64,000 nucleotides of DNA from Lepidodermella squamata (lineage: Eukaryota; Animalia; Gastrotricha). Where the stretch lies: positions 62,001-126,000 of the forward strand of contig JBLDXI010000032.1 of NCBI GenBank assembly GCA_047495785.1, in the 5' to 3' direction. Under the pieces are notes generated by a model, which had not been told where the DNA came from, made no database searches, and worked only from the letters and a program-made list of their open reading frames with translations. This document shows positions 19,029 to 33,735 of the stretch, piece after piece (the first letter of the stretch is position 1; each line of letters starts with the position of its first letter). Both the position numbers and the translations under genes were made by a program.

Positions 19029-21907
19029 TCAAAGGGCGCAACCTGGAGCGATGCAAGCTAATAAATAAAACACGATCAACTGCAAGCAAGAAAAAGAAAA
19101 TTTGAATTCGAACTTACCCTGAGTTCCTAGGACAAAAGAAACAGCAAAAAAAGAATTACTAATTGATAGATAAATTAAAAATTACTAGTTGAGCAATCAG
19201 CGCCCGTCCAGCCAGCATTGCAGACGCATTGATTGGGGGCGGCACAAGTACCCCGAAGGAAACAACTTGCCGGACAGATGGCTATTGATGAGATTGAAGT
19301 TCAGTATCATAGATAGATGTAAGAAAATTCAAATTAAATTTTAGAGCTGCGAGGAAAAATTTACGAGTAGTACAATCGGGGGCCATCCAAGATGCTGCGC
19401 AGGAACAGCGGTTAGGTCTGATGCACGTTCCTCCATTCGGACATCCGGATGGGCAAACAGCTGGGAAATAGAAGGCTTTGCAACTGTATGGATTATTAAA
19501 GTATCGCTTACGGGTATCACACAACACCCCAGCCCAGCCTGGAGTACAAGTGCAAGAGTTCGGCGCCAAGCATCTGCCTCCAATGCCGCATGCTGGGTTG
19601 CATACAGCTGTAAAGGACGAAAAGCTGCGAAAAGGTGTTAGAGATTAATAATCGGCAATATAATACGGGTAGTACAATCCCAGCCTCCCCAGCCAGTCTG
19701 ACACGTGCAGCGAAACCCTCCTAAACTATTCAGATCTCCAACGCAAGATTCAGCCAGACAGTTAGTAGGACAAGCTATTTCTGGCGAAGAAATTGTTGAT
19801 GTATAAATGTTAGGCAGAAAGAAATTCACGGTTTATCAGCTTGCATTGTTCCTTGAGCTTTGAAAGCTCGTTCGATGTCAGAACGGTTTTGTGGATCGAC
19901 GTACAGGCGTATGTATTGTTAAACGCCCCATTGAAACTAGTTGAAGGTATTCGCCTGAAAATGGACCAAATTAGTCGAATATCTCAAATCTCAAATCTGT
20001 GACTCTATTCTTGGTATGGTTTACATTAAAAAGCTTATTAACTCGCCTTGCTCCCAGGTAAAGAGTGGATGCCGTATATATAGCCGATATCTTCAGGGGA
20101 ACACTGAATTGATCGTCGCAGAGAATTGTCATTTGAGAGCTGTTTGCGTTCCAAATCATAGCGTAGAATCGCCACCCCGTCATATTGGCTTGCAAATATT
20201 TCCAAGGGCCATTGTAAGAAGAGTAGCCGACCAAGTCGGTTGGTTGTAAGTCGTTTCCATTAGTTGTGCTGTAACGCCACAATGACGCAAATCCACTGGT
20301 CCCATCGCCGTACTCGAAAACTGGGCCTCGCCGTGGCAAGTTTGCAAAGACAGTAATTGTGAAAGAAGTCGTTAGGACGCCTGATGGGATATTTATCCAA
20401 TTTCCAGCGGTTCCAGTCTGTAGCGAAGTGTTCAGTTGCTCGTAGGGTCCAATGGCCGCGGGGCAAGGGGTTGGCTCAAATGTCGCGTCAATTCCATTGC
20501 CAGATATGTCTCGATTCCGAAACAGAGCGTTCAGCGGCCAATATCCGAGAAGGCTAGGCAAACTTGCCTGGTTCGTGATAAATTGTTGGACATTATCTCG
20601 GCCGGACGTCAATTCTGAAAACACCAGCGGAGCTTTAAAACTATAATTGCTAGCACTTATGCTCGAAGATAGGCTAATATTGAAGGATTGGGCTATGGTT
20701 GGGAAAGAAGACTTTTCTTCCCAGAAAGGAAACTTTATTTGCCTAGTCTAACTATCTATCAAGGGTAAAAATTAAAAATTAGTTAATTCTCACGAGTTGT
20801 GCAGAGAGAACCAGTCCAGCCATTATAACAAGAACAGGTATTAGGAGCAGTACATCGGCCGCCAACACCGCAGGTAGGATCACAAACGGCTGATCGGAAC
20901 GGTTAAATACTACAATTCGAACGTAATTATCGTTTTGAATGGGACATACGAATGCTGCAATCCCAGTTTGTCCAACCGAATTGGCAAGTGCATCGATAGC
21001 CTCCTGGAATTAAAAGATCCCCAACGCATGTCCCAGCCTGACATTTGGTCGAACAGGTGATTTCTATAGTGGTATTATAACGGATTGAACATAACATTGC
21101 AATACTTGAAAGCGTCTTACGATTGATAATTTGGCATTGATTTCGAAGAAGAGCCAACTGCGCTGCGTTGAGCGCTGTTTTATGTATTGATAAGCAAGCG
21201 TATTTGTTGTTGTACGGCCCAGACAACGCGTCACCTGGAAGTTTCCTGTCAAGGCAGAGAATTTATGATTATGAGGTGATATGTAATACTAACCTCGTTC
21301 CAAGGTAAAGGGTCCTATAAGTACTAATCAACGAGGTGGTAAGAGGTGAACTTATTTGATCGTCGCAAACTGCTGTCATTTTCGTAGTGGTAGAGTCGAA
21401 AACTTGCGCAACAAAGCGCCAACCAGACATGTCGCAGTTCTGAATTATTTCGGACCCTGGGCCGGGTGAGACGTAAATAGAATTTGGCTGCATAATATTG
21501 GTGTCGGACACAAGCCTCCAAAAATGAGCGTAATTGATCGTTGCGTCCTCGAATTCGTAGATCGGACCTCTTATTGAGGTAAGCACGAAGCCGGCTATGG
21601 TTACTGATGATGCGCCAACATTCAGAAGGTCCGAAGTTATGTATAGGTAATTTCCGGTGCTGTTTGCGTGAGTTTCGATCGCGGTGCCAGGCTGCCCAAA
21701 GGGACCAACGGTCACCGGCGAAGAAGATGGCGCAGAAGTCGCATGGATTAGATTTGCCGAAATGTCTTTTAGTCCGAACAGTGAATTCAGTGGCCAATAC
21801 CCAATGATATTAGAAAAATTCAACTGGTTAAGGGCGAACTGAGTGCCGTAATCTTGTCCCCGTACTTCATGCGTGGTGATTAATAGAAGGATAATGTGTT
21901 GAAGCAT
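19029..21907 (-). CDS. Secreted LamG/ConA-like-EGF protein copy 3
   Basis: Signal peptide MLQHIILLLITTHEVRG; same exon structure and phases as copy 2; ends ACIAPGCAL*. Confidence 0.85.
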
Positions 21908-22546
21908 TTTTAGCGTATTTCAATCCTAACTAAAAAAGAGCGAAGGTAAAAGAGAAAAGACTGTCGTTTTATTTTGAGGTAGCAGTTATACGATCAGCAA
22001 GTCATTAATTCATTGATGAAGCCTTGTCTGCGGCGGTAAAATGTGAATGTAAATTCTAACGATCATGTCAAAAAATAAGCTGCCAATCATCTCCATCGAT
22101 CTAAACATCGATCTAAATATTTCTATCCACATCACGAAAGCGTTTTCTTCATTCCTAAATAACACTGTGTACTTTTATTGGTAATCTTTGTTTGCGTCAT
22201 CGGATGAAGGTAGGTGCGCAAACGAACAGTGACAAAGGCAACTCGTGAGTCTCGTGTAGTTCGATCGAGCATGCCAGCCAAACCGAGCTATTCACTGCCT
22301 GCTAATCATTTTCAGCACCAGTCACTCAAACGGCACCTAATAATCAATCACGAGTAGGAATCCCAGCAATGCCGTAACATCATGAATGAAAAAAACACAT
22401 GTTCATTATAGGGCGACTTTGCAGTCATGTGATCTGAAAGATTTGAAAGATTTTGGGACAAGGGACAATGCAAAAAATACCTAATCAACAAAAAAGACCG
22501 GAAGCGTTTCCAGCCGCATATGAATGAAACACAGCCCATGATATTA

Positions 22547-22906
22547 CAGTGTGTCCAAGAAATTGAGGTCAAAGCTGTTTACCTGCTTTTTCATCAATTC
22601 AAGGATTTTTTTTTCCATAAAGTCTATGAGGTTGGGCAGATCCGTACGAAAGAGGATTCTCGCCTGTTAGACATTGCTCATTGCCGCGCGATCAACAGTT
22701 GGCAACAGGGCTACAACCCCAATTTGTAAGACAGCTGAAAACAACGATTTTCACGTATCATTTATGATTTTCGCACACATCAAAAACCGTTCGAAATGAC
22801 AGATTTCAGATGTCATTTCAATGTCAGATGTAGCCTCATGGATAAGCTCCTCGAAGTGATGAAAAATCAGGTGAATAACTTTGACCTCAATTTCTTGGGC
22901 ACTCTG
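22547..22906. mobile_element. Tc1/mariner-like MITE
   Basis: TA|CAGTGTGTCCAAGAAATTGAGGTCAAAG... is inverted as ...CTTTGACCTCAATTTCTTGGGCACTCTG; imperfect TIRs of about 55 bp. Confidence 0.7.
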
Positions 22907-23019
22907 AATAACATGAGAACATAACAGATTCAGCGATGTTTTTATTGAGAAGGGTCAGCACAAATCAAATCGGGAAAATGAAAGATCACAGTGAGATAGT
23001 ATCAGTAAAATATAATGTA

Positions 23020-24745
23020 TTAGTTCTGAATCGATTTGGATCGCAGCGAAGCCAATACGGACGAATGGCCCATTTTCAAAGCCAAAGAGAACGCAGTTTC
23101 ACCATTCAACTGCTTCAAATTGGCATCTGCCCCACTTCGAAGCAGCAATTCAACCACATCAGCGAATCCCCGCTCAGCCGCGCAAATCATAGCGGAATGG
23201 CCCATTCGGTTACGAATATTCACGTCAGCGCCATTGGTGATAAGTAGGGCTACAATATCCCGATAACCTTGATCGGCAGCCAGAATAATCGCAGCGCCAG
23301 AATTCACATCAGCCCCTGTTTTGATCAAACGTTCTGCAATTTCGAATTGACCCCGATACGCTGCGTAAGCAATCGCAGACCATTCGCTTGAGTTCGAAGC
23401 TGTGATGGCTGCTCCGTGGTTCAGAAGAAGTTCAACAACTGAGAGATTCCCAGATCCAACTGCTCGAAGCAAAGGCGTCATTGCGTTAGCGTCCCTAGCG
23501 TTTATATCGGCGCCATTTTCTAATAATATAGATGCGATTTCCCGATGACCAGACTTCGCGACGAAATGTAAAGGCGTCCATTGACATGAATTGCTTTGAT
23601 TCACCAAAGCGCCGTGTTGTAGCAGGAGACTCGTTAAGGTTCGGTTGCCGTTCCTAGCTGAAAACATCAGACTCGATACTCCAGCAGTGTCAACATCGTT
23701 AACATTTGCCCCTTGAGTCAGAAGTTCCAAAACTACCTGACCTGTAAACGGAAAAGCTTTTTTGAAATGGATAGTCCATTAAAAAATTTCAGCAAGACTA
23801 ATGATATTAGGTTAACAAAGCTTTCTTAGGCTTAACAGAGAACAGCATTTATTCATCGATTTTAGGGACTTCTAGAAACTGGGAAACCTTACCGCGATTT
23901 TGGCATGTAGCCAGTAGCATTGCAGATTGACCGTGATTATTCTTGACATGAACGTTCGACCCCGATATGAGCAGCTGCCTCACAACATCTAGATGTCCAT
24001 TTTCACTCGCCAACATCAGCGGCGTGTTGCCATCATGATTTCTCGCATCAACATCAATCCTGTACTTCAGAAGCAACTGTATCACTTTGGAATGCCCATT
24101 TTTCGCGGAGAGATGGAGCACGGAGCCGAAACTGCTAAGCTTCGTAGGATCCGCGCCATTCTTTAGAAAAAGCTCGACAAGTTCCGAATTTCCTTTCTCC
24201 GCCACTATCGCCAGAGGACTAAAGCCGTCGAAATCTGCTTGGTTCACTAGGGAGTAATCGCTTCTCACCAGAATCTCAGCCACCTCGAAGAAAGAATTTT
24301 CGGCGGCAAAATGGAGAGCGTTTCTCCCACAGTTGTTCTCAGAGCTGAGATTAGCTCGGCTTTTGATAAGCAATCTTATAAGATCTGAATGGCCATTAGA
24401 TGCAGCGAGAATCAAAGCTGTGGAACCGAAATCATTCGCCGCGTTCACATCTACCCCGCGATCGATTAAAAGCTTGGCGACATTCAACCGACCATTCTCC
24501 GCCGCGAACATCAGCGCCGTCCAGCCGTATTTGCTGGTCGCATTTATATTCGCTCCCTTCTGAAGTAGCAAATCAACAGCATCTCGATGACCATTAGCCG
24601 CTGCCCACATAAGAGCTGTTTTGCCGTAGGATTCCTCATCACCAATATCAACTTGACCGGCAGCTTTTTCTAGGCACAACCGTAACGCTGGTAAATCGCC
24701 GTTTTTTGCAGCTGTCATAAAATAAGCCGCAGTCTGGCGTAGCAT
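23020..24745 (-). CDS. Ankyrin-repeat-only protein (~524 aa, ~15-16 repeats), two exons
   Basis: Two ankyrin ORFs join in frame through the phase-1 intron 23742-23892 (CGC G|GTAAG ... TTTACAG|GT CAG), giving ...QNRGQVVLELL... Confidence 0.88.
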
Positions 24746-26527
24746 ATCGGTGTGAACAATTCAATTTTATTAGGTAGGTACATACAAGTTAGGTACACAA
24801 AATTCGTGGGTGTTAGCGTATTACTCATAGAGATAAGAAAAAATTAGATATCGCAAATTCTTCGGTACAGCTGTGTCTACTGACTCGTATGGCTGAGAAA
24901 AAACTAAGCGGCGGTAGTAAATTATAAAGATAAATAATTAATAAGGTGGACGTGGTGGGGCATCTAGATTTTTTGTAATCTCTCACCATGGCCGCTGGCC
25001 AATTTGTATTACAACTTTTCGCACCTAATGCCCTGCTCGCGCGCGCGGTTTTGTAGTCGTAGATGTTTTTTTAATATGTTCCGGCACGCTGTCAACACGA
25101 GGCTTGAGATGGCGTATGATACCGCTGGCACCGGTGATGATGGTATATGAATGGCCGAAGCTATTGATTCATCACGCGCGTAAAATACGCGGCGCGGCGC
25201 ATTTTTTTCAAGAGCGTGGGCCATAAAAAGAGCGGGTGGTACGCAACTAGCCAAGTATTTAGGATGGTATTGATATGGATGTTAAATAGTATTATATTAT
25301 CAAGGTGGCAGCTAGTCATTGCTGAAATATGCACGTGCGTCTGAGCACAAATTACGTGGCTGGGTTCAACGGATGACTTGATAACGAAAATCTTTGTCGC
25401 CCATAACAATTAGGATTGAATTCGCCAATTTCCTGGTTTTTAAGTTTTCTCACGAATTGTTGCACGAAAATGATTTAACGCAGGAATATATGAAAAACGG
25501 TCACTTCCTGCCTTGTACTGATTATTAGAATATTAAAGGGTGTGAATATTTTAAAAATAAAAAATATGAACTCAGGGTTTTTACTGAATGATGCACTGAA
25601 TATTCAACCTCAATTTCGCACTACCAAGTGCCTAATTATTATACAGTTCATACACTTTTCTGCTGCAAATGCCAAGAGTTTGTTTGTAGAGCAATTTCCT
25701 CACGAAACACCGTTGAAGCTATGATACAAAATCGGCAACTTGGCATAACGTCGTACGTCCTCGACAGATAAATTATTTGTTGGTTATGATTCAGCGGATG
25801 CTTGCATGCTATTAAGGCATTCTTTGAAACCGATAAGCAAACCTTTGAATCCTGACGTTTCAACTTATTTGTTGCTGATTAATAGAGCGGAAAACCGATG
25901 GGCTCATATTTCATATGACACGGATGAGTCCTCTACCATGTTTCCGACTTTGTACAGCGTGTTCTATAAGTAACGCGAACATAGAAAATGCGGGGAAAAG
26001 TGACCAGGAACTCTTGAATGAGAGGCATAGTCATATCTCATGACCAGAAAAATCGTCGAATAATCTAAAATGCCTTTAGAATAGCACTCAATTCTCTTGC
26101 CGCTTGCCGGGTTTTAAAATCCGAAGAAATGTGATCCAACCAGGTAAAAACCGAAAATAACCGAACCAGGTACCAGTGCTAATCAGGGTTTTCTCCAGTA
26201 AATTTTTTCGGTAAAATCATGGATAAAGAATGGAAGATTCTATCAGTTGGCTCAATTTCAAAGAATAAGATTAATTTCCGTTAAAAAATGGTGGCGAACC
26301 TTATAGTTGAAAATCAATTGCTGCAAATTTTAACCTGATTATTTGTCATCTTTCCCAATTTCATTGTTCAAGAAATTAATACCACTTCATTACTCACTCG
26401 AGATGTCATTACTCATGGCAACATATTACTGCTGATAATAGTGAAATTTCATGTGTATAGAAAAAATTAATATTTTCCCATTCGTTTGGAATCAATCAAC
26501 CATGAAATTTTGGATAAATGCTGATTA

Positions 26528-28520
26528 ATGAAAACATTGCTGCATTTGACAATCGGTCATCTTTTTGTTCTTGTTTGTTGCTGGAATGTGAATCCACTCA
26601 TTGATATACTCGTGAAAGCGTGAGGGCGGGGGTCGGCTCGTAAACAATAGCAATGTTAAAGAATTCATCATGTTTTTTGATAATGCCATGTCAATCTAGG
26701 TGCGCTTTCATTATTCAACAAATCTACGAGATCTCAATAGCAACTACTCATGAAAACATCAAAATTCAAGATAATTTTATGAAAAAATGATGAACCGTTT
26801 TATTTTCCTAACGTTAATTTTGCAATCGATCACTGCGCAGACAAATGTAAGCCAATTTCCGCTCGTGAAGATTTCCCATCGAGCTTTGAGTGAAGATTGA
26901 TGCACGATGATGTGTTAGATAGCACGGGTTTGTAACACGCCTGTTGTGGCCACGGGTGAGATTCGGCTGATTAGCGGCGGTGACACCATATCGGCGCCTA
27001 GTCAGATAGCTGTTAATGGCCAAATCATCCTGACTTGTCCTCGTGGCTATGCCGTGGCTAACGGCCCTAGGGCTGCAATATGCAACCCGCCTGGTGCTTG
27101 GTCAAACACCTTAGGCACCTGTATGGCACCTGGCGGGGCCCCTAGTGTTGCACAAACGACAACGGTAAATCATCAAAGCTGGAAAACACAGAATACTAAC
27201 ACCTTAACAAGCTTCCTAACCTCACGAATTATCAGGACTTAATTTTGATCCGTCTGTAAACAGGCTGCTACAGGAGTTAGGTCTTGCAATGTACCAGCGA
27301 TTACGAATGGCCGTGTCTCGACATACGGGGTGGCACCTGGAGCTCAGGAGATTTCAGTAGTCCCCCAAGGAGCCATGGTAGCTCTGATTTGTGACTCGGG
27401 TTATCGCTTGGCTGGTGGAACGCGGACAAGCGTTTGCACATCGAGTGGGCAATGGTCAACAATTCTCGGTCGCTGTGTTTCCAGCACGGAATCCGCTCAG
27501 ACACAACCACCGCCACCAAGCAGAGCCCCAGGTACATTTGAATACCGATTTCATTATCGCATCATTTTGAATATACTCATAGCTACTCCTGCTCCAAGCA
27601 GAACTACGACACAGTCTGATGTCAGTTATGAGTGTGGCCAACGTGAACTTGCAAACGGAAATGGCCAGCGGCAGGGTGTCCGCTACAAAATATACGGCGG
27701 CTCCCCGGCAAGTTACCCTTGGATGGCCCGTTTCGAGGTAATCTACGCCGACGATGTTACCCGAACTGCAATGTTCGGCGGAACATTAATCGCCCCGAAG
27801 TGGGTTTTGACCACCGCGAATCGTCTTGTCGGAAGAAATATCCTCAAAGCAGCGATTCATTTCGGTTCGAATTACCGCCGCAATCCAAACCCTGGTACGA
27901 GATCGACTGGTTTCAAGCCATTTGAAACTACGTACAAGTCGATTGTTGTTCATCCACGATACGACGAATCGCAACCGTTTCGTTACAATTTCGCACTAGT
28001 TGAACTGAACAGCTCAGTACCGCTAAGTCGGGAAATTCAACCAGTTTGTTTGCCAGATAACCCAAGCCGAATTTGTGATGATCTGCAGTACTCTGCCAGC
28101 GCCAAGTTGATCGATGGTTGCGACCAAGTCATCGCTGCAGGTTGGGGCATCACTGAAATGTCGAATCTGTTCCCGAACGAGCTTCGTCATGTGAATTTGA
28201 CGGTTTGGTCTTTTGACCAGTGCAAAAAGGTGGCGTCGGATTTGACCGAGTTTGAGTTCTGTGCTGGTGGGGAACCGGGAAAAGACACATGTGTTGGCGA
28301 CTCAGGTGGACCGGCAATGTGCTTGAAGGACGATCGGTATTACCTAACTGGGGTTACTTCCTCAAGTCCAAGCCAAGCATGTGGAGTGGAGAATATCCCC
28401 AGTATCTATGGGTAAGCTTACACCTAGCTTGTCACCTTACTAGAATGTACGCTTATTCTCTTCTCCTATAGGCGAGTCTGCAGCGTTATACCATGGATTC
28501 GTGGAATGATTGAGCTATAA
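26528..28520 (+). CDS. Sushi(CCP)x2 - trypsin-like serine protease homologue, predicted catalytically inactive
   Basis: Two CCP domains (C..P...C..GY....G.....C...G.WS....C), a Thr/Pro linker, RYK|IYGG and GDSGGP; last exon GRVCSVIPWIRGMIEL*. The 5' signal-peptide exon at 26528 is tentative because the phase to the next exon is unresolved. Confidence 0.85.
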
Positions 28521-29189
28521 ATGAAAATAAATCGCTGAACTTCCTAGGGAAGTTGCCCTTGGTTTATTAGCTCCCACTTTCAAAACCTCTTTACAAATAT
28601 TTGAAGAAAATAAACTGCACATTAAATTGTGAAGAGATAAGAAAGATGTTTTCCTTTTCTGAACTTTTAACTGGCAAATATCCTTCATATCGCTGAGTGT
28701 TAAGTCGGCGAACAGTGACGCCCCTGCACTCGATAGTTCGCTATTCAGCCTGGCGTAGAACTTCTATTAAAAAAGCAACCAGTCGGATCTTTATATCTTC
28801 GCGAAAAATGCATCGTAGTGGAATAATGAGATGCGGGTTTTCCACTTTCTTTCAATTCTGTCGCAGAAAAATTTGATAAACAATTAATCATTATAAAGCC
28901 TTGACCCCAGTCGATGTTTTTTGTAGTCTCTTGGGAAGGAAAAACGAACTTTGACTAATGTAGATATGGATTCGTTGTTTTATAGCTCTAACCCCTCGAT
29001 TTTTGCCGATGGAATTGTTCTCCGAAAGTATCTATGGCATTTGCATTGCATTGCACTGTGATATGTATTCCGATTGGGGACATAGCATAATGGCATTGCA
29101 ATCAGTGCAGAATAAGTTATCTCACCATGATGGAATCGTCCGAGGGTATCGATTTTTCCTTCAACAACAACTCTTTACGCCCACCTGAT

Positions 29190-29461
29190 CAGTCTCACTT
29201 TTATCGTTAATTTCACTTTGTTTACTGCACCCACTTCAGTGTTTCCTGCGGAGATTCTACTGCCCACATTAAGTATTATAGTCACATAAAAGTGACATGT
29301 GTGTGATTTTTCGCGCTGTGATTTTTTATGCTCAGTGCGAGTGGTCAATAAAAAATAAAGTTTGCGCTCACTTCAAATTGTGAGCCATATGTTTTTCGGA
29401 GTGGGCACGCGAAGTGGTCGAATCAGTGCAAAACAATAGGCTGATGATCAAATTGAGACTG
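29190..29461. repeat. Possible degenerate MITE
   Basis: Short inverted ends CAGTCTCA...TGAGACTG with further imperfect inverted blocks; no TSD seen. Confidence 0.35.
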
Positions 29462-30442
29462 CCACTCAATAATACCCCGGAACTTTCCTAGTTTACAGGG
29501 TAGATACCCTGAGCTCAGAGCCTGCTCTACTTTCTACTCTCATGTTCATGTCCTAAAATTCTTGCATCCAATATTCTAGGTTCATCCTCACTCTTTAATC
29601 TATAATAATCTCACTCTTTAATCTCGATGAATCCGATGCCTACTTCTGCCGCTTTGTCCCAAGTACCTACCAAGGTTTCACGTTTAATGAACAACATCAC
29701 TGATGAAACGTACCAAAGTAAAGATGGACCGCTGATCTATCCGTCATCTAATCCCTAGATGTGATGCGTCTTGGCGATCGATTTATGGATGTTAATCAAG
29801 CTCTTATGATTATTGTCTTCGTTATAGTAAAATGGTTGAATGACCTACATCGTAGCCTTTCGATTTTGTACAATTATTCCTAAGGGGATGACAAGAGGTT
29901 TTATTTCAAAAAGTACGTGTCGTATTTTGAGAATCCCCCTCAACTTGCTTTCATTCTTTCATTAACATGGAATAGATCATGCATAAGTCACATTCCTTAT
30001 TATAGCTTTTAGACAGTAATGGAATTCGCAATTCTAGGAATCGCAGGCTCGTGATCGCATTAGGCCAAATTGAATATCGGCTTTCTCGCTGACTCATTCA
30101 ACCTTACTCCGCAAACACTTCGAGAAACGTAGTAGTGAGACGGCAATTTTTGACAAAATATTTAATTTTCCGACATGAAGCAACAGACATCAGTGCAGCA
30201 TGTTGTAATCTGATATTGCGTTACCACTTTCTGCGCTAATAGCCGCCTCTCATCTTGAGCCATCTCCATCCGTTGTCACTGCTTTTCAGTTGTTTTCAAA
30301 CACTTAATCCGGAAGTGTATGTTGTTATCGAACATCGCTTTGTTTTGATTCATCACCTCCCTCACTCTCTTCAAAATTCAGGAACAAGTTAAACATTTTA
30401 AAAAAACGCTTGACTTTTTGCTTCAGATTTTTAACACTTAAA

Positions 30443-30742
30443 ATGAGCTGTTTCACAAGCAACATCTGCGCGCTCTTCCTTGGAGCTATTTTCATATTAA
30501 GCTGTCTCTTGCAACTTTGCAGCTCTCACCCAGCCGCTGAGGTATGATGAGTTGTCAGATGAGCCGAATAAATTATTTTTTAATAAAATTTCCAGAGGGT
30601 TGTAAGGTCTGCGTCGGATTATTACAACGACGATTACTTTGCCGGCTACCCCCAACGGCAGCAGAACTCTGGCGGACAGGATGGAGGCCAGTTCAGCGAC
30701 CGAATGATGGACATGCTTATCATGAACATGGGCCGGCGATAA
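30443..30742 (+). CDS. Secreted amidated peptide (neuropeptide/hormone-like) precursor, 81 aa, two exons
   Basis: Exon 30443-30541, 54-bp GT-AG intron, exon 30596-30742. Translation: MSCFTSNICALFLGAIFILSCLLQLCSSHPAAE/RVVR-SASDYYNDDYFAGYPQRQQNSGGQDGGQFSDRMMDMLIMNM-GRR*. Confidence 0.85.
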
Positions 30743-31194
30743 GTGACAACCGCATATTACTTATAATCTGCAATAGTCAACAAATTTTCTGATTATTTTA
30801 GTCTTTTCCGCTTCATTGCTTTGCATGTAAGCAGTTGTGCGTGGCAAAAAGCCCCATTTTTATTTGTCAATATTGCAAGTTGTGTTAGTGTGCGTAGCTA
30901 AATTATTGTGTTAGTGTCAAATGATAATAGGTCATTATTTTATTTTGAGCGCTGGCGAGCGTAATTAAACGGTATAAACACGAAATAAAATGCAATGTCC
31001 AGATCCTGTTCTTCATGTTCAAGTGTTTATTACATCCGAGAGAAGAAGAGGAACTTGCCTTGACGCTCGCTTAGCTGATCGTCGGAAGTTGAAGTTCGAA
31101 AAAGCCTTTCTAATGCACGTCCGGCTCAACTGATGATAAAAAATCATAGCGCACAAAAAACCAAACAAGGGGCTGAAGGGTTAGCGAAACACTA

Positions 31195-33735
31195 ATGCAT
31201 TTAAAATTGATAACAATAACAATATTGGCCTGCATACCAGGTCATCATTTCACAGATGTGGAATCAGAGATTGCTCCGAAGCCCTATGTTTTATCTACCC
31301 TCGTATTGCTACCATTCACGGGCACGGAGCCGAGAAATTCCCGGATATGTCAAGCTGTCATGCAAGACGTGGCCAATGTGATAAATTTGCGTCAGGACAT
31401 CTTACCCGATTATTTGATCTCCCTCGAATTCCGCGACGAAACCAGCCAAGGTGCTAAATCAGTGCAAAATACGGTCGAATTTCTTCGAGGCTTTCCGAAA
31501 TCTCCAATCGATAATACGACAATCTACCGATCTCCAGTGATAGCCGGGACATTGCTATCGAGTGGTTGCGAGAAATTAGGCCAATTGGCCTATCATCTGG
31601 ATTCGGTGATGGTCGCTCTGGGATGTGCAGCTCCGATTTTTACCGCTAACCGAGGGCAGTTCCCGAATTTATACCGCGGCCAAGTTCCCGGTGAAAATAT
31701 CGTCTATCCGAGAATTCAGTTCATCCGAATTTTCGGGAAATGGTCCAATGTTGCGTTGATTGCCAATGTTAACAATTTGTACGACAGAATGACCTCAATT
31801 CTGACTTTGAACCTGCTGCAATCCAATGGTATTACAGTTACCTGGTTCAACATGGTTAGCGACGTTACTCGAGATGTCGTCGATTCGTTGAAGTCCAGTG
31901 ACTCGAGGGTCATCATTATCGACATTTCCCAAGTTCGAATGCTGCACATGTCTCTATGCCTGGCCTACGACTTGGGGCTGACAGGACCTAGGTACACCTT
32001 CATCACCCAGCTTAACGCATTCACGGAGCCGCAGAGTGACCAAGAACCATGCAGCCGCGAGAAGCTGGCCAAACAGTATGATTCAACTATTTGGATCGGC
32101 TTTACAAATTCAGCGATTGAAGACAACGGAGCAACCTCGCTAGGTTATGATTTGGACCAATTTGAAGCCAGATTTAACAGGTCGGTCAAATCGGACCCTG
32201 ACTACTCAATGCGGCATCTATGCCACGATAACATGCTCCAAGCCGCGTTGGTTCTCGACAGGGCTGAAGCTATACTCGCTGAGAACGATTTGAGTCTAAG
32301 GTATGTATCTACTGATAACGTAACCGAAGTCATCGACGCTGTGAAGCAAAGCGCTTCAACCATCAAATTTACTGGTCTAAGAATCGGTCGGAATCGATAC
32401 TCTTACTGGAGACTTGAAATGGATAACGAACCTATGTACGTCGCTCAATGGTCGTCGGCAAAACAAAAACTAGAGCCGTTATTCAAAGCTGTTCTACAAG
32501 ATGGAAGATCAGTGTCAGATCTCGAGAGTTACGCAATGAAAGCGATTAGCGATTCTGTTTACAGCTTGATCAATCGCCTACCCAGGGACAAACCGTTGTA
32601 CAAAACCGGGTTGAGAATGATACCGAAAAGTGCTGGAACGTCGTTGGTCGCTCTAGGCGTTACTGGAATGATTCTTCAAGTGATTTTCGCTCTTTTAGTC
32701 CTGATCAAGTTTCACATCGAAAAGCACGCCTGGCAACGGGAGATCGTGTTATTACTCGGGTGTTTTTTCGGTAATTTTGCTGGAACAACTCTTGGGCTGA
32801 CAGCTTTCCCTGGTCTTGCGATGAATACGCTATGTGCTATGACTACTTTCATAGGAGTGTTAGGGCTGCTATTCATCACTGGGGCTCTTTTTGCCTACAT
32901 TTCCTGGCCTTTACCTGAAGGTGGCCGGTTTCGTAGGGTGAACTCAAGTAATCTAGTTGGTAGTCTGAGGTTTATCCCGGAGGTTCCAACACAGCCAACT
33001 GAAGCTTACCTAAGGGATCGTAGGAGGAGTTCGTTAGCTCATCGACCTCTCGCCCCAGCGACTAGCCCCCTCAATTTGGTCGGGAGTATATTTTTTATAA
33101 CCGCCAACGTTGCTGTAGCGATTGCTTGGATGATTCATGATAGGCCGAAGTTTCAATTGGTCACGCAGACCTTGTCACATTATGACCTAGATTCGGACAC
33201 GTGGCATGACACGAAAACTTGGTCATGTTCCGGGCGGTATTTACTCCATTGGTTGCTAACATTTGGTTTCCTTCAAGTCGCTCAGCTATTAGCCACCCTA
33301 CTCATGGCTGTTAAGTGGCGGACGATGCAAGTTTTTGTCTTTATGACAATCGAGCAATTCGTCAAAACTTCAGCGATTCAAAATTTAGCTGTTATCGTTG
33401 TTGGATCGTTGATTTCACTGGCAGTTCAGGATATTGTTGTCTGTGGGATTATTTTATCTGCTGGTCTGTTGTTGATTTCAACACTGACTAGTGTTGTATT
33501 CGCTCGGTTTCATTTGACGCTGAATCGGCTGACATCGCGGCGAACTCGCGCGACGGAAGCCAGGCGGCGCAGCAGACGCAGTTCGCATGCGCCGACGGTG
33601 ACGATCACTTATGCGAATGGCGCTGATTCGCGAAGATCGCGAGCCTCTAAAGCTTCTCGAATGTCAAAGGCTGAAGTTGAAAACGAAGCTCATGTTTCTG
33701 ATGACAGGCTTTCTATCGAGATAGCAGACAAATGA
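31195..33735 (+). CDS. Class C GPCR, GABA-B-like (Venus flytrap + 7TM, no Cys-rich domain), intronless
   Basis: 846 aa with signal peptide, INLRQDILPDYLISLEFRDE, FPNLYR, LKSSDSRVIII and CLAYDLGLTGPRYTFI, followed by seven hydrophobic segments. Confidence 0.88.
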   Translation: MHLKLITITILACIPGHHFTDVESEIAPKPYVLSTLVLLPFTGTEPRNSRICQAVMQDVANVINLRQDILPDYLISLEFRDETSQGAKSVQNTVEFLRGFPKSPIDNTTIYRSPVIAGTLLSSGCEKLGQLAYHLDSVMVALGCAAPIFTANRGQFPNLYRGQVPGENIVYPRIQFIRIFGKWSNVALIANVNNLYDRMTSILTLNLLQSNGITVTWFNMVSDVTRDVVDSLKSSDSRVIIIDISQVRMLHMSLCLAYDLGLTGPRYTFITQLNAFTEPQSDQEPCSREKLAKQYDSTIWIGFTNSAIEDNGATSLGYDLDQFEARFNRSVKSDPDYSMRHLCHDNMLQAALVLDRAEAILAENDLSLRYVSTDNVTEVIDAVKQSASTIKFTGLRIGRNRYSYWRLEMDNEPMYVAQWSSAKQKLEPLFKAVLQDGRSVSDLESYAMKAISDSVYSLINRLPRDKPLYKTGLRMIPKSAGTSLVALGVTGMILQVIFALLVLIKFHIEKHAWQREIVLLLGCFFGNFAGTTLGLTAFPGLAMNTLCAMTTFIGVLGLLFITGALFAYISWPLPEGGRFRRVNSSNLVGSLRFIPEVPTQPTEAYLRDRRRSSLAHRPLAPATSPLNLVGSIFFITANVAVAIAWMIHDRPKFQLVTQTLSHYDLDSDTWHDTKTWSCSGRYLLHWLLTFGFLQVAQLLATLLMAVKWRTMQVFVFMTIEQFVKTSAIQNLAVIVVGSLISLAVQDIVVCGIILSAGLLLISTLTSVVFARFHLTLNRLTSRRTRATEARRRSRRSSHAPTVTITYANGADSRRSRASKASRMSKAEVENEAHVSDDRLSIEIADK

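Follow-up and report, generated by a model that had tools for sequence, protein, structure and literature searches.

A probable two-exon gene for a secretory prepropeptide with one predicted amidated 41-residue peptide in the gastrotrich Lepidodermella squamata

The window, the whole 64,000-nucleotide stretch of DNA that was analysed, holds at 30443-30742 a gene model of two exons that encodes a prepropeptide of 81 residues. A preliminary description had set out a signal peptide, an RVVR site, a 41-residue peptide and a terminal G-R-R-stop, interrupted by a 54-bp intron. Each of these elements was reproduced exactly from the sequence, and the exon boundaries that it had placed at 30541 and 30596 match a GT..AG intron at 30542-30595. 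The features are as follows, with all coordinates of the gene given as window positions:

30443-30541, + strand: exon 1 (33 codons), comprising the ATG, the predicted signal peptide (residues 1 to about 28) and the first part of a short propeptide (HPAAE)
30542-30595, + strand: intron, 54 bp, phase 0, GTATGA...TTTCCAG, 72% A+T
30596-30742, + strand: exon 2, comprising RVVR, 41 residues, G-R-R and TAA
30596-30607, + strand: RVVR, predicted proprotein-convertase site with Arg at P4 and P1
30608-30730, + strand: predicted 41-residue peptide, acidic and Tyr-rich at the N-terminus, Gly/Gln-rich in the middle and hydrophobic and Met-rich at the C-terminus
30731-30742, + strand: G-R-R then TAA, the predicted amidation donor Gly and basic residues for carboxypeptidase trimming
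30984-30989, + strand: candidate polyadenylation signal AATAAA, which would imply a 3'UTR of ~250 nt

The start codon at 30443 lies in the context AAAATGA, with A at -3. The signal peptide was judged from Kyte-Doolittle hydrophobicity together with small residues at -3/-1; its core spans residues 8-25 (18 aa, mean 2.54), and C-S-S|H provides small residues at a plausible signal-peptidase site. Two details count against the model, namely an n-region that carries no positive charge and an RVVR site that has no basic residue at P2. Going upstream from 30596, the exon-2 frame stays open over just three codons, in which a single AG occurs, so the acceptor is forced if this frame is coding. Heuristics for intron length based on pairs of ORFs within the window were too noisy, and were replaced by the spacing of adjoining myosin-head exons genome-wide; the gaps are mostly about 50-58 bp, and an intron of 54 bp is therefore of the usual length in this genome. 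A pyrimidine-rich, CAG-ending stretch at 30413-30442 (ctttttgcttcag), 17 bp upstream of the ATG, resembles a 3' splice acceptor and, from its sequence, may point to an intron in the 5'UTR or to trans-splicing.

The 41-residue peptide has a pI of 4.05 and contains 5 Met, 4 Tyr and 6 Asp, with the Tyr and Asp residues mostly toward the N-terminus and the Met residues toward the C-terminus. It lacks both cysteines and cationic amphipathic character. The Tyr residues occupy positions 5-14, and the peptide ends in ...LIMNM followed by the Gly. When exon 2 was modeled by single-sequence AlphaFold2, residues 29-45 of the exon (the last ~17 of the peptide) came out helical with a pLDDT of about 77, and the N-terminal two-thirds were mostly without regular structure at low confidence. 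The C-terminal part is thus probably helical, on the weak evidence of a prediction of moderate confidence.

The neighboring genes include an intronless ORF of 846 residues at 31195-33735 on the same strand, 452 bp downstream. This ORF has its own ATG, its own signal-like N-terminus and several hydrophobic spans in the C-terminal half, and it contains an ANF_receptor ligand-binding domain (E = 4e-14); by sequence it has the look of a class-C-like receptor that has diverged strongly. No relative of it was found at E ≤ 1e-5 in the word-index protein search, and none in metagenome contigs. Upstream, the ORF at 27330-28415 encodes a trypsin/Sushi protein, for which no relative was found at E ≤ 1e-20, and the remaining neighbors are ankyrin-repeat ORFs or ORFs without a Pfam domain. 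The neighbors have no close relatives on record, and no second species was found for a comparison of gene order. Rfam returned no RNA family in the window, including the interval 29815-30317.

A second copy of the gene is present in the same genome. Exon 2 has one other genomic match, on contig C7, with 100% protein identity, and this near-identical copy is the only one; the genome contains no diverged paralogue. The 3.1 kb around the gene are 97.9% identical between C7 and the contig of the window (C32), within a block, colinear over 12 kb or more, that is 96-98% identical (window 20000-32239 against C7:2306578-2320399, inverted on C7) and shows a net length difference of about 1.6 kb. The two contigs are each several Mb long, and the blocks may represent either uncollapsed haplotypes or a segment that was duplicated recently. 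Both blocks also contain a ~1.1-kb segment (window 20788-21860) that recurs many times at 71-76% identity, with paralogues at C32:20818, 57327, 69596 and 78331 and at C7:2323696, 2329942 and 2336975; these repeats point to a local tandem gene family.

The copy on C7 is intact, with the ATG, both splice sites, the frame, the stop, RVVR and G-R-R all kept. Exon 1 and the intron are identical in the two copies, and exon 2 differs at four positions: 30652, 30676 and 30679, which fall in the 41-residue peptide, and 30736, a CGG/CGA difference within the G-R-R codons. Each of the four is a third-position change that is synonymous in the proposed frame, and each would alter a residue in both of the other frames. 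Only 20% of the possible single-base changes in exon 2 are synonymous, or 30% of the transitions, so that four of four would be expected with p of about 0.002-0.008 if no selection acted on the proposed frame. The reading frame thus appears to carry the mark of purifying selection between the two genomic copies, as judged from four substitutions, which are few events. In the downstream receptor ORF the copies show 22 synonymous versus 5 non-synonymous differences, a sign of purifying selection across the two copies more generally. The copies diverge by about 1.6% over the CDS, rising to about 3.6% for the presumed 3'UTR and about 9% across the intergenic interval 30991-31194; since exon 1, the intron and ~500 bp upstream are nearly invariant too, the low local divergence need not be driven by coding. 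That upstream interval, 29815-30317, shows no differences at all between the copies, which may reflect constraint on a promoter or 5' region, or else local gene conversion.

The genome encodes enzymes for cleavage, amidation and Tyr sulfation of such a precursor. We found at least eight P_proprotein domains, which belong to proprotein convertases, and 39 matches to the Cu2_monooxygen (PHM/DBH-type) domain, with one strong match on C12. About 25 of these 39 lie in a single 370-kb stretch (C13, ~1.99-2.36 Mb), a large local expansion. A multi-exon orthologue of tyrosylprotein sulfotransferase (TPST) is located at C21:1457473-1458229 on the - strand, its first exon matching solved TPST1/2 chains with E = 1e-21. 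A Sulfotransfer_3 gene on C42, also considered for this role, was rejected as not TPST-like. Given convertases, PHM-type monooxygenases and a TPST, we predict that cleavage, amidation and Tyr sulfation are feasible.

We infer transcription of the gene, each of the processing steps and a role in signaling. The signal peptide of ~28 residues would be cut off on entry to the ER, and a furin/PC-type convertase would then cleave after RVVR, freeing a propeptide of 9 residues. A carboxypeptidase would take off both C-terminal Arg residues, and PHM and PAL would use the exposed Gly to leave the new C-terminal Met amidated. What would result is a single acidic peptide amide of 41 residues. Its N-terminal part, disordered and rich in Tyr and Asp, might be sulfated by TPST, and its C-terminus is hydrophobic, rich in Met and probably helical. 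The peptide would most likely act as a neuropeptide or peptide hormone through a receptor. The preliminary description had also raised a cleavage at R|QQ that would yield a pyroglutamyl peptide. Such a cleavage, like shorter products in general, is possible but is not predicted: the 41-mer contains two single Arg residues (PQR, SDR), with no basic residue at P4, P6 or P8 of either, and we therefore regard the pyroglutamyl product as speculative.

Taken together, 30443-30742 is in all likelihood a coding gene. We also consider it probable that the full explanation holds, namely a two-exon gene for a secretory prepropeptide that yields one amidated 41-mer, most likely a neuropeptide or peptide hormone. 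The earlier proposal of a neuropeptide or hormone precursor thus stands as far as the anatomy, the selection on the frame and the enzyme genes are concerned, but no relative in a second species was found that would show the conservation it had looked to. The searches for relatives used exon 2 alone as the query (48 aa). No match was obtained in the word-index protein search (an index of 5.8 billion), in a HMMER search of 1.84 billion cluster representatives, or in the ESM Atlas, JGI metagenome contigs and prokaryote genome contigs, and neither a Pfam family nor a PDB chain matched at E ≤ 10. Across the collections searched there was accordingly no homologue in another species, and the word-index and HMMER protein collections contained no RNA-derived protein matching exon 2, which argues mildly against a strongly expressed gene. 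A query of 48 residues cannot reach distant relatives in libraries so large, so these blanks show only that no close relative is on record. In the literature, none of the top-ranked papers listed contains MNMamide, NMamide or MNM-NH2, the only matches being to the unrelated string IMNM. Among the gastrotrich papers listed there was no published catalogue or neuropeptidome of gastrotrich neuropeptides, and the Lepidodermella genome paper (PMC11660948) does not mention neuropeptides.

We compared the predicted precursor with known families of amidated peptides. The resemblance to CRF/DH44/ELH-type prohormones is one of layout: a signal peptide, a convertase site, one peptide of ~40 residues and Gly with basic residues at or near the end. 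The 41-mer falls within the about 36-46 residues of this family, its amidation signal is at the precursor end, and its C-terminal part is likewise predicted to be helical. It differs in having no sequence similarity to these peptides, and typical CRF-type precursors are much longer than 81 residues. Membership was rejected on the absence of any Pfam match or PDB chain and on the CRF profile (PF00473), which has no match anywhere in the genome at E ≤ 1, this locus included. The earlier view that the peptide belongs to no known family, and is CRF-like in length only, is borne out by these blanks.

The second comparison is with CCK, gastrin and the sulfakinins. The 41-mer shares with them Tyr beside Asp, a good context for TPST, in a predicted amidated secretory peptide, and the genome encodes the TPST orthologue. 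In those families, however, the sulfated Tyr is found no more than about 7 residues away from a conserved (W/H)M(D/R)F-amide end, whereas the Tyr cluster of the 41-mer lies 27-36 residues from the ...MNM-amide end. With the C-terminal motif absent (...LIMNM-Gly) and no Pfam match, membership was rejected. The same holds for Met-amides of the tachykinin/bombesin type, since LIMNM is neither FxGLM-amide nor GHxM-amide and there is again no Pfam match. The likeness that does hold is to amidated precursors in general, with a signal peptide, a convertase site and a Gly-basic end, and processing enzymes in the same genome. The gene is probably a lineage-restricted neuropeptide or hormone precursor without detectable relatives. 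It is of an ordinary and familiar kind, that of the orphan amidated peptide precursor, and has no bearing on a wider open question; it gives a concrete predicted product, a 41-residue Met-amide that may be Tyr-sulfated, and each credible precursor adds to the map of peptide signaling in Gastrotricha, a little-studied spiralian phylum.

The same evidence for a coding gene would equally fit a real secreted small protein or peptide that is not neuro-endocrine, such as a gland, adhesive or cuticle secretion, an antimicrobial or defensive peptide, or a pheromone. Nothing links the gene to neurons, a lineage-restricted product without relatives is often seen among fast-evolving secretory products, and a composition that is acidic and rich in Tyr, Gly/Gln and Met is unusual for a neuropeptide. 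We nevertheless consider a non-neuroendocrine product unlikely. Prohormones classically have this layout, a single peptide flanked by a convertase site and a terminal G-R-R, and the sequence of the peptide is constant between the two copies. The absence of cysteines, the low pI and the lack of cationic amphipathic character also set it apart from most antimicrobial and toxin-like peptides.

Whether the arrangement could arise by chance in non-coding DNA, mimicking a precursor where no protein is made, was addressed by a scan for the architecture on both strands of the window under loose criteria (an ATG, a hydrophobic stretch of 12 residues, any GT..AG of 40-80 bp, an internal basic site that was either dibasic or R-x-x-R, and G-[KR]-[KR]-stop). 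The scan returned exactly one model, the gene at 30443-30742. Simulated windows generated from Markov chains of order 1, 2 and 5 gave 0.02-0.04 chance models per 64 kb, few for a single window but, at these loose criteria, about 40-75 across the 121-Mb genome. With so many expected genome-wide, the precursor pattern alone proves little, and the case for the gene therefore rests on divergence that is synonymous only, on the length of the intron and on the processing enzymes. A codon-usage log-odds score trained on the long ORFs of the window gave the model 9.9 bits, compared with 5.8 ± 7.7 for stop-free non-coding stretches and 12.7 ± 6.4 for true coding windows; because the model is not separable from the non-coding stretches, the score is uninformative. 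The number of chance models expected genome-wide, the uninformative score, the blank in transcript-derived proteins and the good conservation of the flanks between the copies speak for a chance arrangement. Against it stand the four differences that are all synonymous in the proposed frame, with none synonymous in the other frames, and the structure that is intact in both copies. The good donor and acceptor motifs, the usual intron length and the A at -3 of the ATG argue in the same direction. We accordingly judge a chance origin to be quite improbable.

For the neuropeptide or hormone precursor that we favor, a receptor partner can be considered from the gene content. The genome contains five receptor genes with the hormone-receptor domain (class B), so a ligand of class B that has diverged is possible, though nothing positively supports it. 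It is a distinctly doubtful proposition that the 41-mer is the ligand of one of these five receptors, as a class-B hormone, of CRF/DH44/ELH type or another, whose sequence has changed past recognition, or that it is paired with the adjoining class-C-like receptor. If true, pairing with the receptor encoded 452 bp downstream would make an unusual combination of a peptide and a class-C receptor.

It is very improbable that the two exons are part of another gene model, for example upstream exons or a uORF of the receptor-like gene at 31195-33735, with G-R-R-stop no relevant protein end: that gene is close by in the same orientation, and the collections gave no RNA-derived protein that would fix the gene boundaries, but it has its own ATG and signal-peptide-like N-terminus, no other stretch differs more between the copies than the interval 30991-31194 that separates the two genes, the AATAAA at 30984-30989 is the same in both copies, and the G-R-R codons include the synonymous difference at 30736. 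A second hexamer of this kind, the ATTAAA at 30964-30969, has changed between the copies at 30965 and 30969, two of its six bases.
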